Source of the DNA: Monocercomonoides exilis PA203
Taxonomy: Eukaryota > Protista > Preaxostyla
NCBI GenBank assembly: GCA_001643675.2
Contig: LSRY02000007.1
Location: 1,736,001-1,800,000, forward strand
Reading direction: 5' to 3'
Length of the DNA stretch: 64,000 nt
The notes under the pieces are model-generated. The model was not told the origin of the DNA. It ran no database searches and worked only from the letters and a program-made list of their open reading frames with translations. The position numbers and the translations under genes are program-made. This document shows, piece by piece, positions 35,321 through 59,918 of the stretch (positions within the stretch are counted from its first letter, which is position 1; each line of letters opens with the position of its first letter).

Positions 35321-36686
35321 TTTCAGCAAAATAAAAAATTAAATTAAAAAAGAAATTTATGTAGGTAATATTGATCATGATTATGTTTGGAAAGGATGGA
35401 AAATTAACCAATATAAAAAGTTTTCATTTCAGCTTGTTTTATACGTTCTTTTCGAATGCATAATGGTACAAAAATGCTTCTTAAAAATAATTTCACAATT
35501 GATAATAGAGACTAAATATTTTGCTTTATGAATTTTGTTCCATTCTGTTCAAACAAATGGGTGATTCTTTTTGAAAAGTCACAAATAGGCCTTTGCGACA
35601 ACTCATTTTTTTAATTATTGTGTCGGTCGAATAAGTCTTTCGTTGTCGAATTGCTAAATTTCTCGATTATTATCCAAAAAGTGTGTAATCATCGTTTTTA
35701 TTGCAAACTTTCTCAATTTATTGAATTCCTAACAACTAATTGGTGTTAATTTTTAATTCAAATAAAAAAAGAATAAAAAATAATCGAAAAAATCTATAAT
35801 GCATTTGATCGAAAGACATTCGTTGGAGATCCGATTTGTTAGCTTTGCTTTGATGCACCAAATTAGAAAATTAGTTCAATTTCCTTGTAAGAAAAGTTTG
35901 ATGCAAAATTTTGCACTCTTAACTTTGAATGTTTTCTTTTTTATTGTTAATTAATCTATGAAACGATATTGTTTGTTCATGTGCATTTATTTCATAATCT
36001 CTTGTTTCACAATTTTGATGTTATTGCTTGATATGCAATATCTGCATATAAGACATACATAAGAAAGCAATCAATAAAGAGATCCAAAAATATTTGTTTT
36101 TTAAAAAACACATTGTTCAGAACAAGTTTGAGGCAATTTTTCTTTTATCCAAGATAATTTTTATTAGATGATGATATTTTATTGTTCTTATTCTTTTTTT
36201 TCAACAAACAGAATTAGATAATATATAAAATCGTTAATTTCAACAATTGAATTGGTTATTAAAACAGCAGTCAATTGGAACCTTGCAATCGAACTTTTGA
36301 CATTCAGAAGTTCAAATTGAAGATTACTTGTCAAATATTTGTTTTTTTAGATCGTTTTTTATTTTGTTTGTTCATTTTTGATGCTTCTTGTAACAAAGAA
36401 AAACAATATTCATAAAAATTTAATGATTTAATAAGCCCTTTGTCCGATAAGTTGCTTCTTCTTCTTCTTCTTCTTCTTCTTTTTCTTCTTCTTCTTTTTC
36501 TTTCATTATTTCTTTTTCTTTTTTCTTTTTTTTTTTTTTTTTTTTCTTTTCTTTTCTTTTCTTTTTGCAAAAATCACACACTTGAAACAAATGTTGGAGT
36601 TGTGAAATATAAAAATGGTAATTAACATTGATTGTATCTTTTATAAAAATGTTTTGAACTGGTTTAAAAATCTGATAGAGGAATTC

Positions 36687-37899
36687 AGAAGAACTTGAGG
36701 AGATTGTGAATGACACAGTCAAAAAGGATCCGAAGCTAATTGAGATGGTTACGATGGAAATGTCGCCAGAGGCGCAGTGTAGGAGAGCAGAGAAGGAGGC
36801 AGAGAAGAAGAATGAAGAAAACATGAAGAAAAGAATAAATGGAAAAGAGATGGTTCATTCAGAGTCTGAAGAGTATTTGCTGGCTGAAAGCGGATCAACT
36901 GAATATATATTAGGTAAGGACTCAGACAAAATCCCTCAATGGATGCTGGAGAAGGTTGATGAGAAAGAAGAAGAAGAGATTAGAAAGAGAACTCCATCAC
37001 CATCCATTTCTTCAACATGTTCAACTGATTCAGATTCAACATTTGTTCGAGGGGAGGATCTGTGCCCAACCACCTCATCCATGTCGAATCTGGTGGATGC
37101 AATGGCCTGTTCATCGCCTCATGAGAAATTGATTGTGGATCTGAGGGATTCGCTGTTCATGCTGCTTCATGGGAGGAACGAGAAGAAGGAGATGGCGATA
37201 AGCACTCTGCAGGAGAGGGAACAGACAGCTGCACAGGTGTTGTTCTGGGTTGCAAATGGAGCTCTCCACTCGTTTGATGAAATGGAAAATCCTCTTCAGT
37301 CATTGTCCAGTCTGAGTCCTCACATTGTGTTGTTCTCAGAGCACATGATCATCTGTATTGTGATGCATTCGGACTTATTGTCAGATGATGACTCTGATCC
37401 ATCATCCATTTCTTCATCAACTGTTGTTACATCAGCCAGTGTTGATGATAACAGCGACTCTTTGCCATCATCAGCCTTTGAGGACGAGGATGACAATTTC
37501 AAAAAAGAGTGTCTGAGGTGGAAGGCGCCTGAGCTGCTGATGAACAAGAAGAGGGAAGCAACGAAGGAATCTGTTGTCTTTTCGATTGGGATGATGCTGT
37601 GGGAATGCTTGACTCTTTAAATCCCGTTTGGGGAGTATGAGGCAGAGGTGGCAGGGCAGAAGATTGTGAATGGAGAGAGCCCAAGTGTTGAAGCCGTTGG
37701 TGAGAGCAGATTGAAGGGTTGTGTGATGTCAAGTTTTGCGACTTGCCCGACAGCGAGGCCAACACTCATCAATGCCAATAGAGTGTTTATTCAGCGTTTC
37801 CCAGCAGGCGCTGTGATGCTCACAGTTTCAGATGCAATTTGTGAAAGTGATGGAAGAAGAATGAAAGAGAAAGAAGTCAATTTTGAAAGAGGAGTGTAA
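36687..37899 (+). pseudogene. Captured cytoplasmic (pseudokinase) fragment of the receptor family, with nonsense TAA at 37618-20
   Basis: 304 aa identical to ORF 62822-63970, which has CAA where this copy has TAA. Homology to that gene starts at ~36687, so ectodomain and TM are absent. Confidence 0.88.
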
Positions 37900-38485
37900 A
37901 ACTATTCGAGATGAATATATTTCATATTTTAGGCAGCAAAGAGTTTTGAACGGAGGAAATGAAAAAATTGAGAAGTTGAAACTTAAAAAAAGGAGGCAAA
38001 ATAAATGAAAAACGCATATTATCTTATTAGAATCTTGTAAAGTGTAAACGAGAACTTTTTAGTGATGATTTTGTGATATTTCAGTTTTGAAATGCAATTT
38101 CAAATGAATTTATCTATCAATCAAAATTAAGATTGATTTATTCAGGATTGAAATGACATTTTAATCACAACTAACTTCTTATTTTTCAACGAATGGTTGT
38201 TGCCATCGATGAAAATCAAATTTAAAGTCACATAAAAAAGAGAATGAAGAAATAACTTGTTTAATTCGTTTTTTTCTTATTAACGATTTGAGGAAAATTG
38301 CAGCTTGTTTCCAAGAGTCAATATCTAAGAATATTTTATCGTTGTTTCAATTGACTTTCAGAATATTATCTTTTTGATAATTTAAGCTAAAATAATTATC
38401 AGTGTTTCAAAAACTGAAATATTAAAAAAAAACAAATTTATCAATTGTTTTGAATATATGTAATAAAATGAAATAATGAAAACTT

Positions 38486-41400
38486 TCAAAGAAGAAGCAA
38501 AGAATTCAGCATTTCCAATGAAAGTGAGTGTCTTCTATCCCCCACGATACGACGAAGCCTTGAAAATAGTCGCTCACAAGAAGTCTCGCTGCAGGGGAAA
38601 GTTATTAAAGCGAAACAAATGTTTGAAAAAATTGAGTGAAAATGATCAAGTTTACTAATTTCAGAGAATAAAACAAAACAATTATCAAGCACAACAGACT
38701 GATGACAGTCAAAAATAAAAGAAGAATACAAAGCTTCCACATGTTCCCTAACTTCCTTGTTTTGGTTAGAAAGAACATTTGACGCATATTGATGAAATCC
38801 ACTTTTCATTCTTATGAACCAATCCATCTTTATTGTTTCGATAATGCTTCTAATTGTCATTTGTTTCTCATCCATATTTTTCAGTTTTCCAAATTCAATA
38901 AATTCACTTGAGCCAATAAATCGAAGATCATCGTCATTTTCAGAATTGTCTGAGGATTCGTCATCATCATTGATTTCAGCAACTTCGCTTCTTTCTTTGC
39001 TCCTTATTTCATTGGTTTCTTTTTCACTTTCTTTTCTTGTGAAATATTTATTGGTCTCTTTCTGCAAAGATAAAGACGAGTCAAAAGTGTCAGGAAATTC
39101 GTCTTCTTCCGAATCTCTTTCAGCTTGCGATAATCCAAAAATATCCAGATCTTCCTCATCAATTTCTTCTTGATCCATTGAAGAAAATTCATTGAATTTT
39201 AACGGAGAATTTTCTGATATTATTTTGAGTAACTGAATAATGTGCATGTCATCTGGATTCTCGCTATCCATTTTTGGAACAGTGATTGTTATATGAGAAG
39301 ATGAATTGCTTTCCTTTTGAGACGATGAAGTTTGCTTTTTGTTTTCGCAAGGTTCAGGATTCAACGAACGAAGAGTGGAATAAAATGCGTCGATTGTGAA
39401 GGGGTTCGATTCATACGTCATTGAAGATGGAACATCGAACATTTTTTTTCGAAAAGATAAATCATTTCCAATGAACAAATCTTTCACAGTTTTTTGCTTT
39501 GAAGTTTCATTTGTAAATTCATTTTGCTTGTCTATTCTTTTCATCTTGCAGATTTTTCGATGATCAGTTTCCATTTCATTTTCAAAAGATATCGAGTTCA
39601 AACAAGAAGGAGAAGAAGATGATTGTTTTGATGGAATGGAAGGAAAAAAAGAAGTGGAAGGAGAGGAAGAGGGAGAGGAAGAGGAAGAAGATGATGAAGA
39701 AGAAATTGCAGTGGAGTAAAATGACGAAAATGAGGGTGAAATTGACTTAAATAAGTGTTCGCTACCCTGGGATTTTGATGAATCTGCTTCGTTCATAATA
39801 TTCATATTAGAATGTTGTAATTCATTATTTGAATCAACGTGTTTGGAAATCGAACAAGTAGTTTCCACTGAAAAAGCCTGTTTATATCCTTCTTTTAACC
39901 TGCACAGTTCTGAGCAGAATGTTTCGGAAAATGATCCTGCTTGATAAAGATTTCTTCCTGTTGGTGTCAAAGAGAAGGCTAAAGAAATAATATTCCCTCG
40001 TTTTCCTGCCAAGAAATAATTAAATAAAAGAATTATAATTTGACATAAACCAGATCGCCAGTTTTCATCGGAAAATTCTGCCAGCTCCTGCATCCAAATG
40101 AACCGTGCAAATGCCTTCAATACCTCGGGGAAAATATCACCTAACTTAATTTCTTCCTTTTCAAAGAACAACTGAAGTTCTTTGAGAGGAAATAAAAGAA
40201 GTTCATTTTTGATCACATCATTAACAAAAATTAATTCCTTCAACTCAGAAAAACAATCATTATAATAATGTTTTCTAATGAAACAACAAATGTCATAAAG
40301 ACAAAGCCATCTGGTTTCCACAAATGTGGGGCATTTCAGAATAGAAGGATTTCTTCGAGAAAGGACTTTCACTTGTTTGGAATATGTAATTAATGAATCT
40401 CTCAATTTTTGAAAAAATTCATTTTTTCTGTAAAAATGACTCACCACTAAATTTAACAGATGATTACAACAATACACAAATATTGGAGTCGTTCCTACGC
40501 ATATCGATAAAGACGTTTTTGTAATATTTTCTTCACTCAAACTTTCAATTGCTTTCCGTTGAGGAAGCAAACCATCCGTGCAAAAGCATCGCACTTCTCC
40601 GTGAAGATCTCTGATTTCCGTTAAAATCTGTGTGATGAGCTTCAAATAGTCTGATGAAGTGCAGCAAGCTTCATTTATCCTCCAAAAAAATGGTTTTGCA
40701 AATTCTTTCAATGGGACTACTGTAATAACTGTATATTTTTTGATTGCAATAACTCCTCCATCAATCATCACTCCAACCATAGAGTTATAGATTATTTTTT
40801 TCCTTTCAGCAATTATTTTGTTCACTTCATCATGAATGATTGAAGAGAGTTTTCTGTGATTTAAACGTGGAAAAATGGACTCTGTTGACAAAGAAGGATT
40901 TTGTTGTGAGATCTGTATTAATGTTGAAATAAAAGTATTAAATTCCGATGAGTAAGCAGACAAGAAAGCTATATTACAATGACAGATCAGCTTCAAAAAA
41001 AGACTAATTAAAGAATCATATTGAAAATGATAAGGCACGATTTTCTTTGTTGCAAAATTTGTTTGATAGCTTGAAGAACATGGTGATTTTAAATATTGGA
41101 CGATACAAGAATTATTCAACAGAGAACATTGATGATTGCATATCCTTTCGCTTCCTTTCCTTCCACATATCCCGCAATCAACTCCTTGCTTGCTGTTAGG
41201 ACATAAATAGTATATGTGGCCATCCTTTTTTAACGAGCCATCATTTTTGACTGGAGTATATGCTATCCAAAGTTTGTTGTTGTTCACTTCAAAGTGAACT
41301 TTTCCAATTTCTTCACCTGTATTGTTGGGGTGTTTGTAATCTTTTTTTTAGAAAGAAAAAGATATGATGTAACTTTTGATCGTTATAAATTATATTCACA

Positions 41401-41630
41401 CATGTTCCAAAATTAGTGGTTTTCGAATATTCCAACTTGACAAAAGAACGATTGCTTCTTTTCAACTCTTCAATTTTTTTCTCAATGCATCGCTCTTTGA
41501 AAAAAAAATCAAAACAATTCATTTTTGTTTAAATAAAACAATGTTTTCAAACCACTTCTTTTGTCTTAATACAATTTTGTAATTCAAGAGGTAAAAACTT
41601 AATGAAATCATAGTCATTTGAAACTTCCAT
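38486..41630 (-). CDS. hAT-family transposase, apparently intact; short 5' exons plus 933-aa main ORF
   Basis: Zn-finger-like CP..C..H.C; MIDGG, CTDG, CCNHLLNL, ETRW, PCSETSCERLFSRL..DRRHSL (D, D, CxxH, RW, E plus dimerisation motif). 5' exons MEVSNDY.. and ..NFGT| are inferred by similarity to hAT-2. Confidence 0.88.
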
Positions 41631-42741
41631 GATATCAGCTTTCTGAAATAAAAGTTGATCTATTCGACAGATTGATCAGATTGACAGACTGATCTATATG
41701 ACAGACTGATCATTTCGACCGACTGATCTTTGTCGAATAAAAATAAAAAATGTTTATTTATGAATTGTTAACATATTATTAATTACTTGAAAATACATGT
41801 GAATTATATCTATCTTATTTTGTTTGAATTGAAAATTAAAAAAAAAAATTCGAAAAAATGCAATAAACATTTGAATAAATTTTTTTGTTGGTCGACTTGT
41901 CGAACGCTTTCAAAAAATGTCGGTCTGTCGCAAAGGTCTAGTCACAAATGTCTTATTTTCAAATAAATCTGAAATTTCATATTTTCCTCAAATTTATGTT
42001 TCAGCTCACAAATCTCCTCAATAATGTTTGAAATAGCATTATCAAGTGATTGATTCCACATAAGTGAAGTTTGATATTTGTTAACAAAATATTTAACAAA
42101 ATATGTGGGTGATTCTTTTTGAAAAGTCACAAATGTTTAATTTTCAAATAAATCAAAAGTTTCATATTTTCCTCAAATTTCTTTTTCCACTCACGAATCT
42201 TTTTTAGAATGCTAGAAATAGCATTATCCAGAAATAGATTCCATATTTGGTAAGTTTGGTGCATGTTAACAGAAATATGAGACATTTATAAAATTTTTGA
42301 TTTATTTGAAAATTAAACATTTGTGACTTTTCAAAAAGAATCACCCAAATATTTTCCTCAATTTTGGAATTCTTCTGTATTTTTTTGACATGGAAATGAA
42401 AGACTTATAATGATAAGGTTGGAGAAAAAGTTTGGAACAAATCGTTGTTTTAAACCTGAGTGACGTACTGACTTTTGACGTGAAATTTTCGAATTCTGAC
42501 GGACTTGGAAATTTTATCACGTCACTGAAAATTTTTCATTAATTCTTTCACAGTCTTTTGATAATGTTAATATTATTTTTATTCTTTTATTCTAACCTTC
42601 AAAAAATTAATAAATAGTATCTTTGAATTTTGTTTTTATTTTTGATCACACAAATAAAATATATTACACTGACGCATTAGTCATTTGAGGAATTTCAATT
42701 GTCATTGACGGTCACTGACGTCAGCTTCAGTCAATACGCAA

Positions 42742-45647
42742 ATGGAAATACTGTCGAAAGATTATCAAAGTGAATTACCAGATGAGTTGGTTTCGAGCCT
42801 CAATAACCCTCTAATTGTTTGCTTTTCAAAAAATGCATTTGTTAAAATATATTATTTTGTATTTGATTCATTGCAGCAAGAAGCTTATGAAAAAATGAAA
42901 AAGAAAATGGAGAATGCGAAGTGCTCATTTGTTCAACTGCAAAAACGCATTAACTCAAAATATGGAACAGGTAAACGTTAAATTTGAAAATAATATTCAA
43001 GATTCATTTTTTGTTAATTTTTCCAAGTGTTCGTTCATCCAAAAAAGAAAAATGAATTTATATCAAAGCTCAAATTTGAACTGATGGAAGATATTTTATG
43101 GATTACTTATGAAATTACGGACGAAAATGGATATACAGGGAAAGATTGTCACAAGTATTTCCTTTGCCCTGTATCCAAGGATGGATATGCTTGCGGCATA
43201 TCAGGAAGGAAGAATTATTCCATTGTTAAACATCACAAGTGCGATTTACTGAGTATTCGAGAATTTTTGAATTTCAAAAAACAGACAGATTTACCCATTA
43301 CCAAAAGTTCTCAAGAGCACTCTATATCATTTGAACGAGATTGTTCACCCAAAGAATTAGAAAAGCAGTTTATATCGATGGTTGGAAGGTGCAATGCTTC
43401 TTTTTTGTCTTCATCCTCAAAGGAAGTTAATACATTCATATTCTCCTTAATTCGAGCCGGTCAAGCTAATCCTTCTATTTCACCTTTGTCAATTTTCCCA
43501 TACTTAACACGAAGGAAAATTTCTCATTTGATCATCAATGAAAAAACTGACAAAGAGAAGGAAAAAAAGCAAAAAGTTTCAAACAAGGGAATAAGCGTAA
43601 TGTTTGATGGAGCAACTGCTGCAAATAAAAAATTCATGGTGGTGAATGTTTCCATTTTGTCTTTGAATTCTTCTCCATTTTTTTGGGGTCTTTATGAATC
43701 GTGTGGAACAACGTCGGAGTTTTTTTTATTCATTCAACAATTAATCTCAGAGTTTCGATCATTCAATGCAGTCATCAGAAGTTTTTGCACTGATGGTTTT
43801 TCTTCACAGAAAAAGGCAATAACTCAATTCTCTGAATTCGAAGAAACTGGCTCAGGAAGTTCTGAAAGAAACAGATACTCATTTTTTCCAGTTCATATTC
43901 ATTGCTGCAACCATCTAACAAATTTGGTCATCATTAATGCTTTTTCAATAATTCCATTTTTAATTTCTATCAAACAAAAGTTACAAGATTTTTCACAACG
44001 ATCCCATTCTAAATCTGTAAGAACACTCTTGAAAAAGCGCATTCCTTCATTCGTCACAACAAGATGGATGAGCCTGTTCAATATTTCTTCTTTTATTAGG
44101 AAAAAATTCGATGTTGTTGTTAATCAAAAAATTTTGGATTATTCATGTGCGTTAGATATTATCAAAACTGAGTTGTTGCTTTTCCCTCTACAGAACCTTC
44201 ATTTAATGTTTGAAAAAGACAGAACAAAGCTTTGTCAAGTGTTTCCTTATTTACTCGATTCATTTGATTATCTATTTCATATTTCAAAGCATCATTTGTT
44301 TCAAGATGCGAAATGGCGCAACGCTATCACAAACGTTATCATTTTGTTACATAATTTTTTTTTAACAGGAATTCGGGGGGAGTACGTGTCACTTTCTTAT
44401 GCATTAACACCAGAAGGAATTCAATTGATAAGAAATCAGACATTTCCGAAAGCTCAACTTTCTTCATCTTTTTCGTTGAAGTGCACGATTCAACAATCCG
44501 ACTCAAATGAAACAATTGTGTTTAATCAATCTCAATCTTTCCCTGTTTCAATTTTTCATCCTTGGCCTTTTCCATTTGATATTTCGGAAAAAACATATTT
44601 TGTGTCAAAAAGTTTAAATTCTTTCGATTCTTCAACTTCCTTCATGAATGAAGATACTCATGACATTTATGATCTTTCAATGCCAAAAAGAAAACAAGTT
44701 TGCTTCGACAAACAAAATTCATCAATTAAAAGCAATAGTTTGCAATCAATATTTCTTCATTTTTTTTAATTTTTTTTTTTTTTATTTTTTAATGATTTTT
44801 AGGTTCGGAAAATAAAAATGAGGAATTTATTGAGATCGAAAAACTAATAAAAGAAATTGAAGAAAAAGAAAAAGATGTTTTTACGAAAATTGGTGAACTG
44901 AAGGGTTTGGAAGACAGTGAAAGCGAAGAAAGCGAAGAATATGGACTTGTACAAGCAGAAAATGATGCGATTGATGATGTATATGATTGTTTATTTCGTA
45001 AGGAATTGGAAACAGAAGATTCTTCATTTATACTGGAAGATTTTGCGTCATCATCAACATCTCCTTCTTCTTCCATCTCACGGACTTTGAGATCTTCTTC
45101 TTCTTCTTCAGAACATTTTTCAGATATCGATACTGAATTGAGAAATGACTCCTTTCATTGTGCATGCAGCACAGCTGGAGAAGAGACGTTTCAAGATGAA
45201 GAAGAAGTACAGGAATTATTTTCGACATAGAAAATAGATTTATGTATAGAATTCAACGAAGAGAAAGAAAAAACTATATTGCAAGAAATCCAAAATTTGC
45301 TATACACAAACTGGTTTCCTCGACTTGACAGATCATTTACGAATTATGCTCGAAGCGTGCTTAAAGATTATGGAAACAATTCTATAACTGCTTGCAAGTT
45401 GTTCTTTGAAAATCAGATGAAATCGAAGCCGGAAGAAATGCTCGAAAAAGATCCAGAAATCTTTTACAATGTAATTGCTGAGTTTGGTAATCTCCAATCG
45501 TTGTATTCAGGCTTATGTTTGTCACTAATCCTATCTCCATGCAGCGAAGCTAGCTGCGAGAGAATTATTTCAAAAATCAAAAACATAATTGGAGATAAAA
45601 GAAGCTCGATAAGCTTACAAACTTTGGAAGCATTACTTCATATTTGA
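42742..45647 (+). pseudogene. hAT-family transposase, spliced, with a single in-frame TAG at 45228-30
   Basis: CPVSKDGYACG..HHKC, MFDG, CTDG, HCCNHLTNL, TTRW, PCSEASCERIISKIK..DKRSSI. Intron 44738-44802 restores frame; ORFs 44907 and 45279 are in one frame across FST*KIDL. Confidence 0.85.
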
Positions 45648-46249
45648 CTTTAATCACTGTTTTGTATTTGTCTTTTAAAAATTTATTTCATTTCATTCTA
45701 TTTTTCAAGTTATTCTTATTGAACAAGCAAAGCATATAAATCATATTCAAAAATACAACGCTTTCAACGTGGTAAAATGATCTTTAAGTTGCGAATGATT
45801 TCTCTTTATATGTTTTTAAAAAAATGGAAAATCATACAGACATATGTTTTTATCTTAATATAAAACGTTCATTCACTTTGTCCGATATCGCAAACTTGTG
45901 GTTTTATGTTCCTGTAATGAAGGACTTTGAAATTGAAATTTCATGAAAGATTGTTTCAAATGAACAATGCAAAATGAAAACAAAACAAAAAATATAGATG
46001 CACTTTCTCAGCATCATCAATTCTAACCTTTATTATTAAATGAATATTGATTTGTTTGAGTGTTAGCATTTAATCATTTCATTCGATTGATACAGCTTGT
46101 GGAATGAAGATTTCTTCACTAACCTTCATTCAAGAAGTTATTTATTGACTGATTCATTCCTTTATTCTTCTCTTCCTCTTCCAAAAGCCTTTCGATTGAC
46201 TAATCATTCCTTCTTTAACTATTTCGACATTAGCAATTCTGCCTGGCCC

Positions 46250-48700
46250 GTCCAAAAAAACAACACAGCAACGCCATTCTGTGAAGAGAGCTCCACACGA
46301 TCAAAACATTTTTTGGCCCTTTGAATCTAGCCAAATGCACTTACAGTTTCATGTTTTGGAGAAATCTCAAGAATCCTTCCCTCGACAGCTGTGTGGATAA
46401 CACAGCTGGATCACTGAAAAGACGATTCTGCAGGAAAAGCTGTCATTTAACTATCTAAACCATATTTATGCCCACGAGCTCACACTATCAGCGGGGATAT
46501 TCAACCTCCACGACGAAAAACTTATCATAGAGGCTGATATGCGCTTGCTGCAGAATCTGCTGCACCTGCCATTCTATTTGGATGCTGCTCCGCTGGGAAG
46601 CAAGACATTTTGGAGATCGTGTGCCAGACGCTGATTCCAACTGACGCATGTTGTGTTTGAGATCGGGCGAGGCACAGAGATAACTGCGATGCACTTTCTG
46701 GAGCAGATACCAATCTGCGAGGTGAATGCTCCGATGCAGTCGATTGTGCTGCGGAACGAAGGTGGGACGAGCATCGACAACAGACTGGAATTGTCTGATG
46801 TGAAGCGGCTGAATGCGTCTGCAACTTATTTCCCTCTGTTTGAGTGTTCTATCACGAGAGGGATTGTACCTGCTATGAAAAGTAGGCAATATATTGGTGC
46901 TTCCATCCACTGATACAAAGAAGCAACTTAATGAGGATTCAGATCATGTTGGAAATCAGATACAGCGCAATGAGTGAGATGAATGAGAATGTGGAGGAGG
47001 ATCAGAGGGGAGAGGAAGTGATGGAACTTAAGGCATCACACACACAAAAACTGAGCTCCAAGCGCTGCTGGCAGGAGACGGTTTCATCGCGAAGGAAGGA
47101 GCAGAGCCACTTGTGGATGAGAAAAAGACAACAATTCCAGCTCCTCTTTCTCCGCTGCCTGGCCAGCTGTGCTTGTTGTCACATGAGCGAATTGGCTTTG
47201 GGAGTGTGGCGGGTGGGAGCATCGAGCGGAGGCTGGTGTGTCTGGTTTATCCGCGTGTGAGGAGACACCGTGCACTGCAGAAGAGGGCGTACGAGAAAAG
47301 AAAGAAGAGAGACATCCTGCATAACTGGAAAGAGATCCATCCGCTGATCAAGTTGCAGGTTTTGACGATTCTGCCGATCAAAGGAAAAATTGCAGAAGGA
47401 TAGAAATGTGTGTGTGATGAACAACTTTATGTGATGCATTCTGTTATTTTGGTGAATTCACTTCTGTAACTTTCTCTTTCGATGAATTCGAAGTGGAATT
47501 CTTCAATTGAAAATCAGAATACTTCAACTTTATTTGCTGTGAATAATGAAGAAGCAAGTTCAAAAGTTATTCAGATCTTTTTGTATCAATGTTTCCCTTC
47601 AACATGTCGAACTTCTTTTATGAATGCTTCTTCTTCATCCTCTTTATCTAATGTTGTTGCTTCCAACATAAACTCAGGCAAAACTTATGATCACTCCGTC
47701 ATCGCCTCACTCTCCACGCAGCACTCTCAACTGGGAAAAATCAAAGGGTTTCCTTCTTCTTCTTATCCTGTGCCTTCTCAATCTTCATCTTCCTCCTCAC
47801 TGGCAATTGCCCCGCATCAACCAAGCATCCGCAAGCAGCCACCGAGAGTGAGCGTCATTGAGCGCATGACGAAATCAAGGGGCATTCAAATAGCCACACG
47901 ACTTGAGCAGTTCCGCCCTGTCCTGGAAAAAGCGAGAAATGAAGAGAATTAGTTTCTGTTGGAGCTAACGAGGCAGCCTGTTGATCCACTTTCGGCTGCT
48001 GCTGCGTCAACACTGCAATCACGAACATTGGCCAGTGGCATTCCACTCAATGAAACCACGAAGCAGGCACTGGAGATAGCAGCGCAGACAAAAGAGGAAC
48101 AGAAGATCAGGAATTTTCAGAAGGAGAAGGAGAGAAAAGCGTTTGGGATGTACAACCTCACTCCAACTTCGTCCGCCATGAAAGGAACTCCAAGAGAGGA
48201 CAAAAGGAACTTGGATCCGCTGAGAGAGTCGCAAAGCAGCAGTGTTGGAGGAAGGAGAATGACTTTTGCAGAAGAAGTGAGCGGAGTGAATGTGTCTCTT
48301 CCTCCCTTGTTGAATCCGTCTTCTGGCTCTTCTTCTGGTTCTTGTTCAGTTTCAGTTCCATTGTCTTCTCAACAGGGAATAGTGCGACAGTGGTTTATGC
48401 AATCACAGGAGATTCAGGGAATTCAATGGTTTATTTCAACTTGAGAAATGAATAAGAAATACTACGTATTTCGTCTGCATCCTTTGGGGATGCAAGAGTC
48501 AAATGAAGGTGAAGAGTGCATGAAGGGCGGATGCCATCGAAGAAGGAGAAGTTTTGTCTGTTGGATGGGCTGCAGAATTTGGATGGAAACGATTTGGACA
48601 GAGGGATGAGGGGAATGCTGGGCGAAGGAGACGAAGATTGTGAATGGAACGACGGTTTCAGAGAGCCATATCAGTAGATATTTTTGAGAATGTTGTTCAA
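46250..48700 (+). pseudogene. Highly degraded coding cargo, possibly a DIRS-like retroelement relic
   Basis: GC-richer, broken ORFs. Ordered motif remnants RELHTI ... VDNTA ... AGIFNLHDEKL recall RNase H (REL.A, DN..A, PG..N..AD.LSR). ORFs 47482 and 47959 are in frame across one TAG. Confidence 0.3.
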
Positions 48701-50795
48701 AAATAGCTCGACTATCCGATTTTCGGAGCTGTATAAAGCTTCTCTTCTTTAAAAAGTGTTTCTGTTTCAGCCACCTCTCAGTGCAAACAGTAATGGAGCT
48801 ATTTCTTCTGTTTCTGCTTCATTGTCATCTTCAGTTATCACTTCTTTATCCTCATCTTGCTCCGCTGTTGCATGCATTTCTGGTTCGTTATTCTCTTCTC
48901 GTCCTTCTTTTCTCCTTTTTCATTAAATATTTATCATCACAAAAATTTCTTCAATTCTTTTGACCACATTTCCTTTCAAAATATTTTATTAGATCAAGAA
49001 CTTTGTTTTCTTTCACTTTATTCAACAATCTTTCTTATTTTTCATTTTCTATTCATCTTTTTCTCATTTTGATTTGTTATGTTTTCCTTCATCAACATAT
49101 TTCCTTGTTTCCTTTTCATTTCATTCATGATCTCTGATTTCAACTCAGAATGTGAAGAAATCCAATCAGATGATGTGTGAGGATAATGAAGAAGAAGTTG
49201 TGTGAAATGTTGTTGATGTATTTGAAGAAGAAGAAGAAGAAGATAATGAATGGATTGAATGAGATGATTAATTGTTGAAAATTGAGAAGATGAGTGTCAA
49301 TGAATATCAACAGCGAAATTCAATCGAATTTTCTTCTTCAGGGTTTTGTCTTCTTCTGCAGAGGAGAAACATCTGAATCTTTTTCACTTTCAGCTCAATC
49401 ATCCCTCCTCTCCAACAATAAATACAAAGCACGCGTCAATCTCTTTTTCGTTCCATCTCTTCTTCTTTAACTTGCCCCCTTTCACAAGAAATCTTCTTTC
49501 CTCAAAAAAATTTTTTCGCCAATGCCCAATTCCAGCCATCTTCGATTTATCTTTAATTTCATCAATCTTCATTTCATTTTTCTTCCTTGCTTTTCTTCTT
49601 CTTCTTCAAAGCCATCCATTCCTTCGCTCTTTCAGCATTCTTAAAAAAAAATAATAATAATTACTTCAAATATATAACGACAGCAAACCTTCTAAACATA
49701 TTTTAAAGTCAATAACTCTATGTTATCCTATTGGCAACTGTTTCCCTCCAATAAAAATTCATAATTCCTTCTGTTTTCAAGTGTTTCATCATCTGATTCT
49801 CCAATCATCCTTTCCATCAGTTGTTTCTCCATCAAGTGAATCGATTTCTTGCTCTTCTGAAAAATGTGAAAAACTTGCATTCAGCTCAAATTCCATCTTT
49901 CTTAGTGAAAAAAAGATTGTTTTTCGTCAGAAAATTTCATCTCCAATTCCCTTCCAAGTCCCTTCATCCTGAACACTTTCCTTATGAATTCGCTGTCCGA
50001 TCTTGGTAGTCAGACTGAATAACAAGAAATAGTGCTTTAATTCATTTTCGATCATTTCTATCTGCTGCTCTGAAATCAATGCAAAAGCTGTCAATAAATA
50101 AACATTCATATTTTGTAAAACAAATAAATAACAAACCTTCTTCTCTATTTAAAACGAAAAATCCTTCTTCAGCGTTTTTTGAGTCCACAAAATTTTTGTT
50201 TATCCAAAGGAATACTGCTTGTTTGAAATGCGTAGCTCTATTTCTTCAATAGATAAAAAATTAGAACAAAAAGAGAAATAGAAATCATTTCAAATCTTAA
50301 AGTTTCTATCTCAAACTTAAATAGAAAAATTGCATTTCATGACTATTGAAAATGGTATTATTTCTTTTTCGTAAACAACAAAAATAAAAATTTAAGCAAA
50401 CATGTCAATATCCATTTCTTTTTCATATTGAAGTTCAATATATTAAGAATATATGGGTCAAGCAATTTATCAAAAAATAACAAACAAATCATAAATTTTC
50501 CAAACAATTGTAATGTCCAATCGCTGATCTTTGATTTTTGAAAATTTTGCAAAAATAATTATGGAACAAATAAAAAAATCAAAAAATAGAAAAAAAATAA
50601 AAATATTATAAATAATATTTTTGAATGAATGTTTTTTTAGAAATTTTTTGCATTGGACACCAAATAACAAACGAATTTGAAATTTTTAAATACTGACGTG
50701 AAAAAACTCCAGTGACGGACGTGAAGGGAAAATCTTCTTCACGTCACTTAGGTTTACGTTGTTTCTTTCATAAATGCAAAAAATTTTTCTCATAT

Positions 50796-51035
50796 GGGTG
50801 ATTCTTTTTGAAAAGTCACATATGTTTAATTTTCAAATAAATCAAAAATTTCGTATTATGATCAAATTTTTGTTTTAGCTCACAAGTCTCCTCAATAATG
50901 TTTGAAATAACATTATCAAGAAATAGATTCCATTTAAGTGAAGTTTGATATTCGTTAACAAAATATTTAGCAAAATATGTTATTTTTAATTTATATGAAA
51001 ATTTAACATTTGTGACTTTTCAAAAAGAATCACCC
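50796..51035. mobile_element. 240-bp MITE, GGGTG family
   Basis: gggtgattctttttgaaaagtcaca ... tgtgacttttcaaaaagaatcaccc; TSD atat at 50792-95 and 51036-39. Confidence 0.9.
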
Positions 51036-52699
51036 ATATGGGTGATTTTTTTTTGATTTCATAAAAAATTCCGAAGTTTGATCATAAACTTATTTCATTA
51101 AGGGTGGGGTGATTAGAGAATTTTCAATTGAAATCACATGCAAATAAAGTTTAATATATCATTTTTAAATTTTATTAGTTGTTTTTAATTCATTTCAAAT
51201 TGTTTTTATCACAGATTTTCAAAAAAACATAAAAAATGATTCGAAAAAATCAAAGCTTCTTTGAACAGTACAAAACTAGTGTATTCTGGTTTAAAAAACA
51301 TGATCGCAATAATAACGATAACGTAATAAAATAATCTCATTTCCAAATATATGTTAAACAATGTTTTTGAAAAAGAATAGAATGAGATGAGTTGAAATCA
51401 ATACATATTTAAGCAAATCAATCTATTTTAACAGTTGATTCACCTTCGTTCTCTTCCCTTTCAACTGTTTCGTATCTTTCTTTTCTGAAAAAAGAAAATT
51501 TTTTGTTTCATGTTCATTCCACTCTCATCATCCAAAAACTGCTTTTTCCAAAAATAAGACATCCCATTTCCTTCCCAATCCCTTCACCCTGAGCACTTTC
51601 CATATGAATTCGCTCTCCCAACTCGGTGGTCATCCTGCATAATGAGATATCCGCTTTCATTCATTTTCATTCATTTCCGCCTCCTGCCCTGAAAGAAACA
51701 CAAAAACAGTCAACAGGTTAATATTCATATAAAGAAAAATAAATAAATACCAGACTGCCCTTCGGCTGTTTTTTGCCAAACACACTCATCTCCACAGCCA
51801 TCATCATTCCAAAAACTCAATCTCTTCATTTCAGCCTCAGAATGGTCAAATTGCAGCATGGAATGCATCTCCATAAAACACATCGTGTATCCCACTGGAG
51901 GGGCTTTTCAGCCCGTACACATTGTGGTGGATGTCAGAGGTGTTTTTCTGTTTTTGGCATGATCATCTCCTTTAATAATATTCTCAACCATCCAAAGAAG
52001 TATTTGAGGTTTATCTCACCAACACATGGCACATGAGGGATGTGGGGCAGAGAAGAAATGGAAGAATTTTTTTTGTGGCAGGGAGTAGAAGTTGGGTGTT
52101 TTTTTGGAATGTTAATATTTCGAGAGGGGTTTTTGAATGAAAGAAATTCTGAGACAAGGGGGTGGCGAAGAGGAAGTGGAGATTTTGAGCAGATAATATA
52201 GTAAATATATAGAGAGGTGGCTGAGGATGGTGAGGAAGATATTTGAGACAAATTGGAGAAATGGAATTTGAAAAAAAGGAAAAGAGGGCAAAAGCGGGAC
52301 AGAAGATGAATATTCTGAAGTGTTAGATCGGAAGTGGAGTATTTTTAATGAGAGGAGAAGATTTTATGGAAGAAAATGGGAAAGATGAAGAAAAGGAGGG
52401 GATTGATATTGTCTGATGATTTTGAGGGTTGAATGGAAGAGGTTAAATGGAAGAGGAAGGAAATTGAAAAAAATCAACATTTTCAATTTTTGAAGAGAAA
52501 GGAGATGAAATTGCAAAAAGAAAGTGAGTTAATTTGAAGAAATCAAGCTTTGTTGATTAATTACAGAATATCAGCCAAAATATTTGCAATTTGGATTATT
52601 GTTTCCTTGTGAAGTTAACTTGTTTTATATAGCATTGCATCAATCGCCAACATCACATGAAACATATCAACTTCTTCACTAAATTTATTGGAATATAAA

Positions 52700-55461
52700 T
52701 GGATTGCTCAATCACCATAAAAATTTATTTTCATCATCATCTCATCTTCTTCACCTTATTTCTCATCTTCCTCATCATTTCCTTCTTCCTCACCTTCTCC
52801 AAATTCTTTGATTTCTTCTTCTTCTTCTTCTTCTCCTTTTCCTTCTTCTTCTTCTTCAAAAACAGCAGCAGTCAAATTCTACAAGAAAGAAAACGTAAAT
52901 AACGATACATCTTCATCTTCCTCTTCATTCGAACAGTCAGAAGTGAATTCATCACAAGAAGGAGCCGAAAAAGCAGAAATTGACGAAATCATCGAAGACT
53001 TCAAAAGAAAACATGCGCCGCGTCTACCTCTTCCTGTGATTCTTCCTCCACAAGAAGCAACTCTTCAGAATTCGTCTTATGTGCCTCGAAAAAAAGACTG
53101 AGAAAAAGCAATCAAAATTCAACACATACCTTTTTTACTCATTCAATTGCTGACATTGGCACAGGCACAGGCACATCTCCTTCTTCATTACCCAATGAAT
53201 CTTTACTTTCTCTTCATCAGCCATTTCCTTCTCCCTCTCCTTCATCTTCTTCTTCCTCATCTTCTCCAGCAGTAACTGACCTTTCTCTCCATCCCAAACC
53301 ACCTCATCGTTCTGAAATTGCAACGGTTCGCCGCATAAGAGCAATGCATCCTCTCCTCCTCCGACGCTATCTCAACCGCTGTGCACAAGTAGCTGCTGCT
53401 TCTGGTGCTTCACGTTCTTCTTCTTCTTCCTCTTTCTCCTCCTCTTCTTCTTCCTCATTGCTTCGTTCTTCAAGAAACAGATTTCTGACAGGCGAAGAGC
53501 AGCAGACGAGGAGGATGAGGCTGCAGTTCGGAAGAAGAAGGAAAAGACAATACCTTGTTCTCCCTTCAGATGTGTTTGAGGCGCTGCCGCTGTGTGCAGA
53601 GTTTCGGATAATGGAGCGATATGCGAAGTATCTGGAATAGAGGAAAAGAGAAAGAAAGAATGAAGCAAGGAACAAGAAAAGAAAGGATAAAAAGGACAAG
53701 AGAAATGATTAAGATGAGGAAGGTGTTGATATCTGCAAATGATAAAGATTAAAATGATGAAGAAAAAGAAAAATAAGTTTGATCAGATGAAAACAAGAGT
53801 TTATCATTGGTTAGAAGAAATTCTTTGAAGGAACCGAAGAAAAATGAAGAAACTAAATGCCTTTCCTACAGCTCCATCTTCAACCATGAAGATAGGAGAA
53901 GAATGATGAGGCACAAACAAAAAGAAAAACAGAGGTTGATGCGAAGGTGTTACTAGGCGCTTGAGCTTCAGCGTGATTCTGTTGTGAATGAGGTGCTTTT
54001 GATGGTCAGACCAAACCTTCTGCTTTCTCCAGCTCCGATTGACGATCAATTAAAAGACCAGGAATTAATGTGAGTGCTTCAAAAATGAGGGTGATGGCGA
54101 AAAGGATGAGAAAGAAGAGAAAGAATGGAATAATTCTTTGAATGAAAATGGAAACAAGGAAGAAGTTGAAGGAGATGAAGATGATGGAAAAGATGAGGAA
54201 AAGAAGTGATTTTGATGGATTCAATGAACAACGACGAAAACGAAGAAGTGATATTGGAGGAATCAATGAACAATCCCAAAGAAGCTGCTTCAAAAGCAAA
54301 GAAAATAAAACGGAAGCAGAAAAGAATTCAAACACCAAAGAATCAATAAAGAACGGCAGAAAAGACGAAATACATTCAAATGAGCCAAAACCCGAGCCTC
54401 TTTCATCACAAGCACAACAAAAACAGCAGCAACAGAACACAACAACAATTCCATCTCCAACACCATCACCTTCTCCACAGCCGAAACAATATACTTCAGG
54501 AAGAGGCGCCTTTGGAACGATCCACTTTACACGAGGGAAGCGAATGGACGGCGGATGGAGAGGAGTCGGAGGGAGAGCGTTGATTGTGTACAGCCAAGAG
54601 ATGGAGATGGGAAGAGGAGCTGTTGGTGCACCTACAACTCCGCTGTCACCTGCCGTTGGAGGAGGAGGAATTGGAATTGGAGGAGGAGGGGCGACGTTGG
54701 GTGTGATGGGGATAAAAGATTTGAACAAAGAAGTGACAAGGGCGATGCAAGATGAGTTTCAGAATGAGAAAGGGAAAGTGGACGATGAAGAGGCGAAAAT
54801 CACGTTCAATTCATTGGAATCAGATGATCAGAGAGAAAAACTGCTTTGTCTGATGAAACTGCAGGAGACACAGAAGAAGAAGGAGAAAGAAGAGAAAGAG
54901 AGGAGGCTGAAGAAGAAAGAAGAGAGAGAGCTCAGGAAAATGGAGAAAACGACGAAGAAGATAGAGGAAAAAGACAACAATCTATAAAGCAGCATCCAAG
55001 AAATACTACAATCACACCTTGGGACAGGCACACAGATCAACCAGAAAGAGAACAAAATGGCAAGCGATGCGTAACAAGAGGTGAAAGAAAGTCAAACACC
55101 AATTTTGACAAGAGAGCGGAAATTGGACTGCATGCTGAATGATTTAGCCAATTCTGACTTAGAAGATTTGGACAATGAACTGGATGTGCCTTGCCGCTAT
55201 GTGCGTATTAAAAGCGAAAAAAAAAACAGGCAATTTGTGTGGAAGATGCGAAAAGTGCCTGTGTATGCAGCAGTCGACGCGAGGCAGACGAGAACAAGAC
55301 TGGATCTGATGAGTGCGCTGAAGATCGTTTTAAAGCAAAGATGGGCGGAACTGCGAAGAGGAAGCATAAGTGACACTCAGGAAAGGAAGGAAAGGAGCAG
55401 GAAAAGGATAACCGCTGCTGTTTTAGAAGGAGAAAGGGATAAGAACATTCAATCAGAATAG
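52700..55461 (+). pseudogene. Fragmented low-complexity host-like gene(s) inside the GGGTG element
   Basis: A series of plus-strand ORF pieces (52808, 53344, 54142, 55081) with Ser-rich and Glu/Lys-rich composition like host genes, broken by stops; no recognisable domain. Confidence 0.45.
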
Positions 55462-57034
55462 CGTGCCTGGAAGAAGAGATACGTTGTCGAAACTTTTTTC
55501 GTCGCTGTCGTTCTAAAAATTGATGTCTTTCTCCACTTCTCGAATTCAATGGCGATGGATCTGATGCAGAAATGCCCTGCCCTCAATTTTTTTTGCGCCT
55601 ACTGATTCAGCTGCTTATTTTTCTTCAAACACAAACATTTTTCTTCATCCTCTTTCTCACTGCTCTTCTTCACATGTCAATTCTTCATTGTTAGTAAACA
55701 CCCAACAGCAATCTTCTCCTTTCAGAACATTTTTAATCTCCTTCACTGCAATCCCACGCTTAACTCACATCTTCCGATTTTTCTGTTATTCCTGGCTCAC
55801 TTTCTCCGCTATCTGTAATTGCGTCAACTTTGCCTCCTCTTTCATTCAACTCCCCTCGAATTAAGCATCAAGGTACCGTCTTTCTTTCCCATTCAGAAGG
55901 ATAAATCATAATAAATTCAAACATAGAATGCCAACTGAAATCCTGAGACAACTGAAATGATTCTGCATTAAACCAAGAATAGCCGATCATCGGGTGCACA
56001 ATCCAAGAAGATAGAATCTGACTTTTTTCATTTTGAGATGAAAGAATTTCAGAAAACAGAAATAAAAAGGTAGGAAAAGATTTTTTTGAGCAAACAGTTG
56101 CGTGGATGGTTTTTGAGAGATTTCACAATATGATACACTTTTGATGAGTCATTGAAGATGAAACAAAGAGAGAAAGCGGTTTTATTGGAAAATTCAAATT
56201 TGAAGGATAATTCTATGAAGAAGTGGTATCTTCAGCTGAAAAAAAGGTGAAGCGAAAATAACAAAAGAAATGGATATTAAGGAATGCTTGTTGATATAAT
56301 TGAAAAAATGCATTTTGGAAAGAAGAATAAAGAAATCAATAAATATTTTTCATATCAAGTTATTTTTGTTTCAACCTCACAGAATAAGAGAGTCTACGTT
56401 GGAGTGAAAGTGGAGTGGAGGAGGGTGAGGTTAGCTTCTTTGAAAAAACCAAACCCATCGAGGGCACACTCAATTGTCAAGCATGGAGAATGCTGAGGAA
56501 TGCCACAGGCATCAGCATCAGTTCCATTGCTGGAAACGATTTTGTTCTGGGCTATAAGAGGGAGACAGCTGTTAAACTTCGCTTTATCCGATGGTTCACG
56601 ATTTCGTGAAACGTTTGATGAAGCAATTGAACCGAATTAAAAGAATGGAGATTTGTTGGCTGTGCTAAGGCGAAGAAAAAAAAGAAAAATAACTATTAAT
56701 AATAAATTGGTTTCAATAATTATGTTTTCTTTTTTCATTTTTGTTCTTTTTTAAATGTTTTCTATGCAATATTTTGTTTTTCCAGTTTTGAAATATCTGT
56801 TAACCTTTAAAAGATAGATTTTTCAATTTTTTTACTCTTTTTAAAATGAACTTGATCAACAAATCTTTTTCACAAAAAACATAAAAAAGGTATGCTTTTT
56901 TCATATTAATAAATAAAACAAATATATATAACAGCCTTAAAAGCAATATATTTGTCAAAAATCAATTTAATTTTTTGATCAAAGAATACCATTATAGATT
57001 TTATTTTTTCGATTTTTGATCTTATTTTATGATA

Positions 57035-59186
57035 CAGTCTGTCCGTAATTAATGTTGATCTGTCCAAAAATAATGTTGATCAAACCTTCAATTGTGTTCA
57101 ATTTTTAAAACCTTAATATCTGATAATAACAGTGATTAAATATATCTATGAGCAATATTTATTTATTGGATGCTCGAACAACACAAAAAAAATTTATGAT
57201 CACTCAAAATGTCCCAACTGTCGAAGAATATAGTGTCAGGCCAGTCATAATGCCCTTCGCTCATCCCCTGGAAGACAGAATTCACGATGTTATTCGAATG
57301 AGAGCAGAATTGAAGAAAAAAGAAACCGAAGCACATAAAAACGAACAAATACAGAAAGCTAATGATTCTGAAACGTTTATCAACAAAAAACCCTACACTC
57401 CAGCCACATTGGAAAAAAGAAGAAAGCTTACGGATTTGTTTCGTGTTCATGGTCACACAAAAACAGAATCGTGGTATGCCAAAGAATGCTTGCTTACAAC
57501 AATTACAACTGCAAGGTATTTATCAAAGTTGCAGGTTGGTGTGGACATTACACAACCGTTTATAAAAAGAGGAAAAAAAAGAATAGTCGATAATGAAACT
57601 TTGAACAAGATAGTAAGAGAAAAAATGAAACTTAACCCGCTAACAACTTTGAGAAAAGTTGCACACGAAATGACAAATGCAGGCCATTCTATTGGGAAAT
57701 CATCGGTTCATAAAATTTTGACAGAAAGAAACAGCGATACACACAAGTTTCCGTTGTTTTCTTTTAAAAGAATTACTGTGCGACCGTCAGCTGGAAATTC
57801 AGAAGAAAATAAACTCCAAAGAATACACTTCGTGGAGAAGCTTTTCCAATATCAGCGGGACGGTGCTATTCCTTTTTTTATTGACGAGACTTCTTGGAAC
57901 ATAAGCTGCATTAGAAAGTACGGATGGTCGGAAAAGGGGGATAAAGTGCTTGTTCCTCCTCCTCCTTTGTTTCAATCTATCACTGCTATTACTTCAATCT
58001 CAATGAACGGAATGGAATACACAGAAGTGGTTCGAGGAACAATAAACCACGATCTATTTGAAGCGTATTTGAAAAGATTCTTGCTATCCATAAAATCATT
58101 TGAATCTTCAGTTATTGTCATGGACAATGCGTCGATTCATCATGTGAATACTGATGATATTATTTATCAGTCTGGACACAAAGTTCTGTTTAATGCTGCT
58201 TACTCCCCTGATCTAAATCCAATCGAAAACATTTTTGGAATCTGGAAAGCCAAAGTTGAAGAAAACTCGTTGAAATGGGAAGATGAGTCTCATTTTATAT
58301 CAACAATGCTTCAAACTTTTTAGAAAATTTCAGCACGCGAAGTTAGAAAAACAATCATGCATGTGGAAAACGATGTGTGGCCTTTGGTATTGGAAAAAAA
58401 GGATTTGTAATGTTTTTCTAACAATCTTTGACTTTTTTCATTTCAACCAGTTTAAACATTTTCTATATTCACTAATAAAATAAAAGAAAAATTAATAATC
58501 ATGAATATTCTTTGTTTTGTTTTAAAGTTAAAAAAATCGATTGAATTAAAAATGAAAATGATAAAAAAGTTTATATGTTTCATATTTCTCTATTTATAAA
58601 TCGAAATAAAGTCAGACATATTCCAATGATAAAATATACAAACAATAATTGTGAATGTGAATATTCTCTAAAAAATAAAGTAATTCTTGAATAAAAATCA
58701 TGAATGCAAAATATACACCCTCATTGCAAATTTCCTTATGTAGATAAATAAAGTTGAACATAAAATATTTGATTCCGAACCTTCAAGTCAATGTTGATGC
58801 AAAAGGATGGTTAAAATAAAATAGATGAAAGCTCATTCCACTCTTAGGAAGTTTGAAACAAAACATAATTTCAATTTGATAATTTCCTGTTCATAAAAAC
58901 TGAAGGTTATTGAAAGATAAAGAAACAAAAAATAGAAACACAATCTAACATTAATCACAAAGGAACAATCAAAATGAAACGCAAACGTGAATGCAACGTG
59001 TGTATTTTCATTTATTGTATCTCAATTGTCAATCATTTTAAAGAAACAATTAAAAAGAAACCAGTTTGTGAACACTTCTTCTTTTGTTTTCATCCTCTAT
59101 TAATAATGGCTCTGCAATAATTTTTTAACTTTACGGTTTGATCAACATTATTTTTGGACAGATCAACATTAATTACGGACAGACTG
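57035..59186 (+). mobile_element. Tc1/IS630-type transposon, 2152 bp, perfect 52-bp TIRs, TA TSD
   Basis: cagtctgtccgtaattaatgttgatctgtccaaaaataatgttgatcaaacc at 57035-86 and inverted at 59135-86; TA at 57033-34 and 59187-88. Confidence 0.95.
57148..58410 (+). CDS. IS630/Tc1-like DD33E transposase; TAG at 58321-23 probably premature (frame continues 28 aa)
   Basis: HTH NPLTTLRKVA..IGKSSVHKIL; FIDETSW, VMDNASIH, YSPDLNPIENIFGIWK; 33 residues between the second D and E. Confidence 0.9.
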
Positions 59187-59918
59187 TATCAAAAAAAATC
59201 ACCCATATGTTGTTGTGATGAAGTTATATATAATGATTGTTTCATTCTCTTTTGTAATAATATCAAACTTTTTCAACAAATAATGCTGAATGAAGGTGGA
59301 TATTTTTTTCACTCCTTCAACATCAAAGTTTTTTTGTGAACATCTTTTTTTTTTTTGATTTTTGATTGGGAACATAAATTTTTGACTCTCCAGAGCACTT
59401 TTAGAAAAAAAAAATACACTCGAAATCGGATGAAATTACATCGGTTTTTGCATAGCTTTTAATGACTACATCCGATTGTGATAATATTCGATGTGACATT
59501 TCGCTGGAAAAAAAAATGAAAATAAATTTTAGAAATAATTAATTTTTGTTCAATTTTCATATTTTTGGTAATTCTTCACAAATACACTTTATTTTAATTG
59601 TTTCAAAAAATTTTTATCGAAATGCACATTAATTAGACTTATTTAAACACTTTTTTGAAAAATCGAAAAATAGAAAATTTTTATCAAAAATTCGATTTTT
59701 CATCGAAAAAAGCACTCATAATAATATAAAATGTTATTAAACAATTTAAGCTCTGTGATTATATGCGATGGGAAATGAATGAAAAAATGAAAAAATGTCG
59801 GTGCATGGAAAAATGTGACTTTTAATGAACGTGATTGTTTTTGATTTGATTATATCCGGTTTTGACTGTACATAAAAATAGTTATTTATCATCTTATAGA
59901 TCAACAGCAATCTGAATA

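Follow-up and report, generated by a model that had tools for sequence, protein, structure and literature searches.

The genome of Monocercomonoides exilis PA203 is available as a Nanopore-based assembly of 101 contigs and about 82.3 Mb, in which repeats amount to 46%, are mostly unclassified (35% of the assembly) and overlap a hugely expanded tyrosine-kinase family (PMC8767320). We analysed a stretch of 64,000 nucleotides of this assembly (contig C69:1736001-1800000, hereafter the window, within which all positions are given); genome-wide counts were made over 82,301,135 bases in the 101 contigs. The gene for BRAP2 (domains BRAP2, RING and zf-UBP) is located at 33237-35320 on the minus strand, and its predicted ATG is at 35320. 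The region 35508-59208, which begins 187 bp upstream of this ATG, is a nest of DNA transposons. Boundaries were re-derived from the sequence, and all of the 23,701 bp could be assigned: the parts sum exactly, with no base to spare.

Architecture of the nest

The nest is composed of a split 178-bp miniature inverted-repeat transposable element (MITE-A), a 6,788-bp composite of two MITE-B copies (B1 and B2) that holds a 6,355-bp hAT element (hAT-1), an 8,306-bp hAT element (hAT-2), a further 240-bp MITE-B (B3), a 6,011-bp cargo element (the 6-kb element) and a 2,152-bp Tc1/mariner element. From left to right, the segments and their terminal inverted repeats (TIRs) are as follows.

35508-35558, plus strand: first 51 bp of MITE-A, ending with the AAAT target at 35555-35558
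35559-42346, plus strand: composite of B1 and B2, 6,788 bp, with AAAT at 35555-35558 and 42347-42350
35559-35585, plus strand: first 27 bp of B1, with the left TIR GGGTGATTC..., ending with the hAT-1 target GTCACAAA at 35578-35585
35586-41940, plus strand: hAT-1, 6,355 bp, TIR TAGRCCTTTGCGACA, 8-bp duplication GTCACAAA at 35578-35585 and 41941-41948
41941-41948 and 41949-42106, plus strand: second GTCACAAA and the rest of B1 (185 bp in total)
42107-42346, plus strand: B2, complete, 240 bp, closing the composite on the right; the second AAAT comes directly after it (42347-42350)
42351-42450, plus strand: middle 100 bp of MITE-A, ending with the hAT-2 target CGTTGTTT at 42443-42450
42451-50756, plus strand: hAT-2, 8,306 bp, TIR TAAACCTRAGTGACGT, 8-bp duplication CGTTGTTT at 42443-42450 and 50757-50764
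50765-50791, plus strand: last 27 bp of MITE-A, preceded by the second CGTTGTTT (50757-50764) and followed by a shared ATAT (50792-50795)
50796-51035, plus strand: B3, 240 bp, with ATAT at 50792-50795 on the left and a shared ATAT at 51036-51039 on the right
51040-59204, plus strand: 6-kb GGGTG element, 6,011 bp without Tc1, with ATAT at 51036-51039 and 59205-59208
51040-57034, plus strand: 6-kb element to the left of Tc1, its last two bases being the TA target (57033-57034)
57035-59186, plus strand: Tc1/mariner element, 2,152 bp, with TA at 57033-57034 and 59187-59188, 16 bp from the right tip of the 6-kb element
59187-59208, plus strand: duplicated TA (59187-59188), final 16 bp of the right TIR of the 6-kb element (59189-59204) and closing ATAT (59205-59208)

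Five pairs of target-site duplications (8 bp, 8 bp and three times 4 bp) and the TA pair are all exact. With the insertions taken out, the three pieces of MITE-A add up to 51 + 100 + 27 = 178 bp, in agreement with the 177-179 bp of 19 intact MITE-A paralogues. A first-pass annotation of this DNA had described the region as a nest that can be dissected to the single base, with a 178-bp MITE containing a GGGTG composite (which contains hAT-1 and, within it, a host gene fragment) and hAT-2 with cargo, and with a 240-bp MITE and a 6-kb element abutting through shared ATAT sites, the latter with a Tc1 in its right TIR. The re-derived boundaries bear out this description, including its coordinates, its six exact pairs, its arithmetic and its placing of the nest about 190 bp upstream of BRAP2.

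At least seven separate insertions, of elements from six families, produced the nest. The same annotation had proposed that the duplications give the insertion order, and for nested pairs they do: MITE-A was in place before the composite arrived and before hAT-2, B1 preceded hAT-1, and the 6-kb element preceded the Tc1/mariner element. For the three abutting elements the order is ambiguous: whichever of two neighbours came first at a shared ATAT, the product is identical. Entry of hAT-1 into B1 is compatible with a date before or after the arrival of the composite in MITE-A.

Paralogous copies and empty sites

MITE-A, MITE-B, the 6-kb element, hAT-1 and hAT-2 were checked in the whole assembly, and each is multicopy with identical ends. 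For MITE-A, the candidates number at least 342 genome-wide. Its family ends are GGGAC...GTCCC, and the left end of the copy in the nest is GAGAC. MITE-A paralogues are uninterrupted at both insertion points, CTCAAACAAAT being followed directly by ATTTTTCTC and AAATCGTTGTTT by CTTTCATAAATGC, and therefore represent the empty sites for the composite and hAT-2 insertions. Uninterrupted MITE-B paralogues likewise read through the hAT-1 insertion point, and in a paralogue of the 6-kb element (L046) the right end is continuous through the Tc1 insertion point and then followed by ATAT. A paralogous empty site was thus found for each nested insertion.

At least 945 MITE-B candidates were found genome-wide. 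Among 16 copies examined, 14 are exactly 240 bp long and all 16 are flanked by perfect 4-bp duplications (9 ATAT, 3 ACAT, 2 ATTT, 1 AAAT and 1 ATAA). Within the nest, 41940-42106 (part of B1) and 50814-50980 (part of B3) are 88% identical. Both MITE-A and MITE-B show the properties of MITEs, namely small size, lack of coding sequence, TIRs, target duplication, high copy number and uniform length. Outside the nest, a likely further MITE-B-like copy is present at 24851-25126, with 111-nt inverted arms and the right end ...AATCACCC followed by ATAT at 25123.

Superfamily of the elements with ATAT-type target sites

The elements with GGG...CCC ends have the termini GGGTGATT..., GGGACGAAAT... and GGGTGATTTTT. 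Their 4-bp duplications with an AWWT/ATAT preference (ATAT in 9 of 16 MITE-B copies) are those expected of Sola elements: PMC3845634 and PMC3627910, which cite Bao et al. 2009, give duplication of 4-bp AWWT/ATAT sites as the hallmark of Sola1 and Sola2, and mention large chimeric Sola2 elements in amoebae. By target site, the GGG...CCC elements appear to fit the Sola superfamily. They resemble Sola elements in the AWWT-type duplications (ATAT, AAAT and ATTT) and in having both MITE derivatives and large chimeric derivatives with cargo, and may do so in their short TIRs starting with GG or GGG. The TIR of an insect Sola1 MITE (GGACCG...TTTTGAAAGTGG) shares with MITE-B a TTTTGAAA block at a similar offset, which is a weak resemblance. 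They differ in that the 178-bp, 240-bp and 6-kb families are specific to M. exilis. None of the elements of the nest encodes a Sola-type DDD transposase.

A Merlin/IS1595 transposase was considered as mobiliser of the ATAT class and rejected. What looked like GGGAG...CTCCC/ATAT ends, at 10331 and 11677, falls within 29-bp TIRs that belong to a Merlin element (10313-11694, 1,382 bp); these TIRs start with GG and contain ATATGGGAG, which mimics an end of the ATAT class. The element encodes a DDE_Tnp_IS1595 open frame (10506-11141, minus strand). Because it has 29-bp TIRs and an exact 8-bp duplication, CATTTTGA, it is a normal Merlin element, of a type already reported for M. exilis (PMC8101967).

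The 6-kb element and the Tc1/mariner element

Besides the copy in the nest, the family of the 6-kb element has two or more that extend from end to end, at 75-78% identity, and many partial ones. The copy in the nest carries a 3.3-kb piece (about 52740-56040) of an orphan multicopy gene, truncated at the 5' side and frameshifted, and the piece is also found within other full-length 6-kb copies. A codon-phase bias between copies, with the coding signal in one frame, indicates that the parent gene is coding; relatives at other loci retain open frames of 597-672 amino acids. In a word search, the sole outside homologue of the protein from a related locus was the uncharacterized protein MONOS_9550 [Monocercomonoides exilis]. 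Comparison of 6-kb copies by tblastx was uninformative, since DNA identity of about 80% produced matches in all frames. No transposase was found in the 6-kb element, a non-autonomous element that was blank in the Pfam search.

The Tc1/mariner element shows a TA duplication, TIRs of 62-67 bp at 96-98% and a DDE_3 transposase, as is typical of its superfamily.

57148-58323, plus strand: Tc1 open frame of 391 amino acids, DDE_3 E = 1.5e-21

The Tc1 protein had no significant match among structure-database sequences, and a search for independent assemblies through this protein returned nothing on record.

The hAT elements and the cargo of hAT-2

Both hAT elements have 8-bp duplications, short TIRs (15-16 bp) and C-terminal matches to the hAT dimerisation domain, which place them in the hAT superfamily. 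Their transposases are 38% identical over 485 amino acids (E = 1e-92). Exons were searched singly; gene models were not spliced together for the searches.

38486-41287, minus strand: hAT-1 transposase open frame of 933 amino acids, Dimer_Tnp_hAT E = 7.8e-4 at 19.6 bits, under the Pfam cutoff
43027-44769 and 45279-45647, plus strand: hAT-2 transposase exons, the remaining ~5 kb on their 3' side being cargo; the exon 45279-45647 matches Dimer_Tnp_hAT at 21.9 bits (cutoff 21.4)
46635-46910, plus strand: CFAP65-like Ig-domain exon in the hAT-2 cargo, PF24291 E = 2.9e-9, decayed

The hAT-1 protein showed no significant sequence match among solved structures, solved hAT structures included. hAT-1 here is apparently intact. 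Five other copies are present in the genome, two of them with exact 8-bp duplications of their own, CTTTCAAT (on contig C30) and CAATTAAG (on C23). Of the further hAT-2 copies, three are full-length and contiguous (93-98% identity) and one is in two pieces (90-94%). The hAT-2 element of the nest is young, its nearest copy being 98% identical.

The CFAP65-like exon has 42 genomic matches. It was found in every full-length hAT-2 copy compared by protein, including two others in which it is 98-99% identical in amino acids. A relative on C30, located in an intact-looking open frame of 2,378 amino acids, probably represents the parent family. As the three cargo fragments of the nest (the kinase tail of hAT-1 described below, the CFAP65-like exon of hAT-2 and the orphan-gene piece of the 6-kb element) are family-wide, they were not acquired within this island.

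A module of about 195 bp is common to the end of the hAT-2 cargo (49942-50136) and the left-hand portion of the 6-kb element (51562-51755), at 76% identity, and each of the two stretches has further matches at several C25 loci.

Probable exchange of the kinase-tail cassette of hAT-1

hAT-1 contains about 1 kb of the tail of a receptor kinase, and a partner gene lies near the end of the window. The kinase family seen in the window is the expanded tyrosine-kinase family of PMC8767320; candidate kinase tails number over 1,000 in the genome.

36686-37690, plus strand: kinase-tail cassette in hAT-1, at element positions ~1101-2105
36706-37620, plus strand: open frame of the cassette, with a stop created by a single mismatch to the neighbouring gene
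62822-64000, minus strand: 3' end of a receptor-type kinase gene, running off the window end; partner of the hAT-1 cassette

The cassette at 36686-37646 is identical at 960 of 961 positions to the kinase gene at 63990-63030, which is in inverted orientation and 25 kb downstream. Beyond 37646 the identity to this gene drops to about 75% over the final 44 bp of homology. Such a nearly perfect tract, followed by diverged sequence, is the signature of very recent gene conversion or template switching that stopped within an older cassette. It is read as a local cassette recently overwritten by the neighbouring kinase gene, or as the reverse transfer, the direction being ambiguous.

The cassette is present in all six hAT-1 copies (the one in the window and loci L052, L053/L060, L054, L057 and L059), and open frames of 278-337 amino acids cover most of it in all six. 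Between copies, the backbone is mostly 86-98% identical, whereas the cassettes are only 74-86% identical, with about 1 synonymous substitution per site (dS) and a ratio of nonsynonymous to synonymous substitution (dN/dS) of about 0.1. Because the cassettes are far more diverged than the backbone, they did not diverge in place since the copies separated, but must have been replaced, through shared homology, by different host kinase paralogues. Fresh exchange is evident in the local copy only; for the cassette of the C30 copy we found no near-identical donor, the best match being 83-84%.

At the other side of the window, an uninterrupted open frame of 2,310 amino acids (1356-8288, minus strand) encodes a receptor-type kinase, the tail of which is 83% identical to the hAT-1 cassette.

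Stacking through shared ATAT and the origin of the nest

The junction CCCATATGGG, in which two elements share one ATAT, occurs at 45 genomic sites versus 8 for the reversed control. With up to 2 mismatches allowed, ATCACCC-ATAT-GGGTGAT occurs at 47 sites versus 0 for the control. Exact MITE-B ends with an adjoining ATAT number 175; in only one of them (0.6%), the one at this locus, does GGG come next. Abutment via a shared ATAT thus recurs genome-wide and is rare per element. With about 7.6 ATAT per kb, the genome offers some 0.6 million sites, and from a few thousand insertions of the class we roughly estimate that 0.3-0.9% of ATAT sites would be hit. The observed 0.6% lies within this range and matches passive re-use of regenerated ATAT; there is no sign that resident elements are actively targeted. 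Search coordinates alone also place MITE-B or 6-kb copies end to end or a few bases apart at C19:956438-956975, C40:71110-71602, C24:282576-284506 and C14:218946-224747.

Taken together, the locus is very probably an ordinary nest of cut-and-paste DNA transposons upstream of BRAP2, with passive re-use of ATAT, family-wide cargo and a recent cassette exchange. The GGG...CCC elements would be mobilised by a Sola-type transposase with a strong preference for ATAT. Each insertion would regenerate ATAT flush with both ends of the element, and a later insertion there would leave a single ATAT between two elements, without any need for attraction to resident copies. Their clustering at this place may reflect tolerance of insertions in a gene-poor spacer already filled with transposons. 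The Tc1/mariner element inserted later, at a TA within the right TIR of the 6-kb element. The gene fragments are long-standing cargo of their carrier families, and on this reading the hAT-1 cassette is exchanged, through gene conversion or template switching guided by homology, with genes of the very large tyrosine-kinase family of the host, very recently with the paralogue 25 kb away.

The first-pass annotation had gone further and proposed repeated targeted stacking that builds islands of gene fragments. ATAT-shared stacking does recur genome-wide, but targeting finds no support in the 1 of 175 MITE-B ends, and the cargo, being family-wide, was not taken up locally. Active homing, in which the ends of resident elements attract the transposase of the GGG...CCC class, for example by TIR binding, so that stacking is targeted and builds islands, could explain why CCCATATGGG is 5.6-fold above its reversed control and why GGGTGAT-type junctions number 47 against 0 in the control, as well as the two successive abutments at this locus and neighbouring pile-ups such as those on C19, C40 and C24. 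An excess over control is expected regardless of homing, however, because each element end supplies half of the motif; the frequency of GGG next to exact MITE-B/ATAT ends is about the expected per-site rate, and the flanks of the 16 MITE-B copies show no extended CCC/GGG-like target motif. We consider homing improbable. Still less credible is an assembly artefact, in which a long-read assembler misjoined repeats that do not form one molecule. The region does consist almost entirely of multicopy repeats and the assembly is Nanopore-based (PMC8767320), but every junction bears an exact duplication appropriate to its superfamily (8 bp, 8 bp, three of 4 bp, and TA), and each interrupted element, once its split parts are put together again, has the canonical sequence and length of its family, which is not expected of chimeric joins.

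For the two-MITE composite, two histories were compared. B1 lacks the final ~55 bp of the 240-bp family and is directly adjoined by B2, and the B1/B2 junction occurs nowhere else in the genome. A recurrent composite family was rejected for this reason; the uniqueness of the junction fits a single cut-and-paste move of the two MITEs as a unit. The composite could instead have formed in place, by insertion of B2 and then B1 at the same AAAT in MITE-A and a later deletion of about 59 bp that removed the right end of B1 together with the shared AAAT. The absence of a composite family, as deduced from the unique junction, is in line with this course of events; insertions abutting at one shared site are known in this genome, and B1 and B2 are only ~73-80% identical, as separate insertions rather than a local duplication would be. 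The deletion, however, would have to end precisely at the first base of B2, whereas movement as a unit requires no additional event and, since cut-and-paste leaves no donor, accounts equally well for the uniqueness of the junction. The outer AAAT pair is compatible with both histories and does not discriminate between them. Formation in place is conceivable, though we are inclined to doubt it.

Several points weigh against the main reading of the nest as a whole. The junctions are known from assembled sequence. The putative Sola assignment is based on target site and termini. The MITE-A copy of the nest has no exact duplication of its own, being flanked by AATA on the left and ATAT on the right; other MITE-A copies have duplication pairs of ATAT, ATTT, AATT, ATCT or AGTT. 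The expected per-site rate is a rough estimate from lower-bound copy counts. Moreover, two abutments and two internal insertions at one 178-bp element exceed a uniform per-site expectation, and a regional or local-hopping bias is likely behind the clustering here.

Other features of the window

To the right of the nest there is a 950-bp foldback (59920-60869) with perfectly complementary 395-nt arms and a 160-nt spacer; related 67-bp segments are located at 59359-59425. A PIF/Harbinger-type transposase open frame (17444-18574; DDE_Tnp_4, E = 4.8e-20) lies in an AT-rich, transposon-filled stretch at 8-20 kb.

Comparison with known systems and significance

Pack-type transposons, such as Pack-MULEs (Mutator-like elements), carry pieces of host genes between their TIRs in several transposed copies. 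In the same way, host-derived segments are found between the TIRs of multiple copies of hAT-1, hAT-2 and the 6-kb family. Unlike Pack-type transposons, two of the carriers are hAT elements that retain a transposase gene, and the hAT-1 cassette varies from copy to copy while the backbone is similar. As members of their superfamilies, the hAT and Tc1/mariner elements are typical in their 8-bp or TA duplications, their domains and the 60-bp Tc1 TIRs, and differ only by strong divergence.

The nest can be compared with the nested MULE clusters of maize and rice (PMC3903597), where younger elements likewise lie within older ones and their relative order can be read from the nesting. It differs from these clusters (PMC3903597) in that it consists of DNA transposons only, from three superfamilies and in a protist, with end-to-end abutments that share one target copy. 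The nest itself is routine, a clean instance of a familiar phenomenon in a genome that is poorly annotated; the apparent recent overwriting of the cassette by the neighbouring kinase gene is its single unusual and unexpected feature.

The base-exact ends, target sites and lengths obtained for six families from three superfamilies provide seeds for a curated repeat library of this genome. The hAT-1 cassette shows one route by which kinase sequence enters the repeats, namely as transposon cargo kept like live genes by homology-driven copying. We tentatively raise the further idea, rather unlikely at present, that hAT-1 serves as a mobile shuttle for the ~1-kb kinase-tail cassette and repeatedly trades sequence with host tyrosine-kinase genes, each copy being rewritten by a different paralogue. 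If this were true, the reverse exchange might also occur, and transposons might move kinase-tail variants between distant members of the family.

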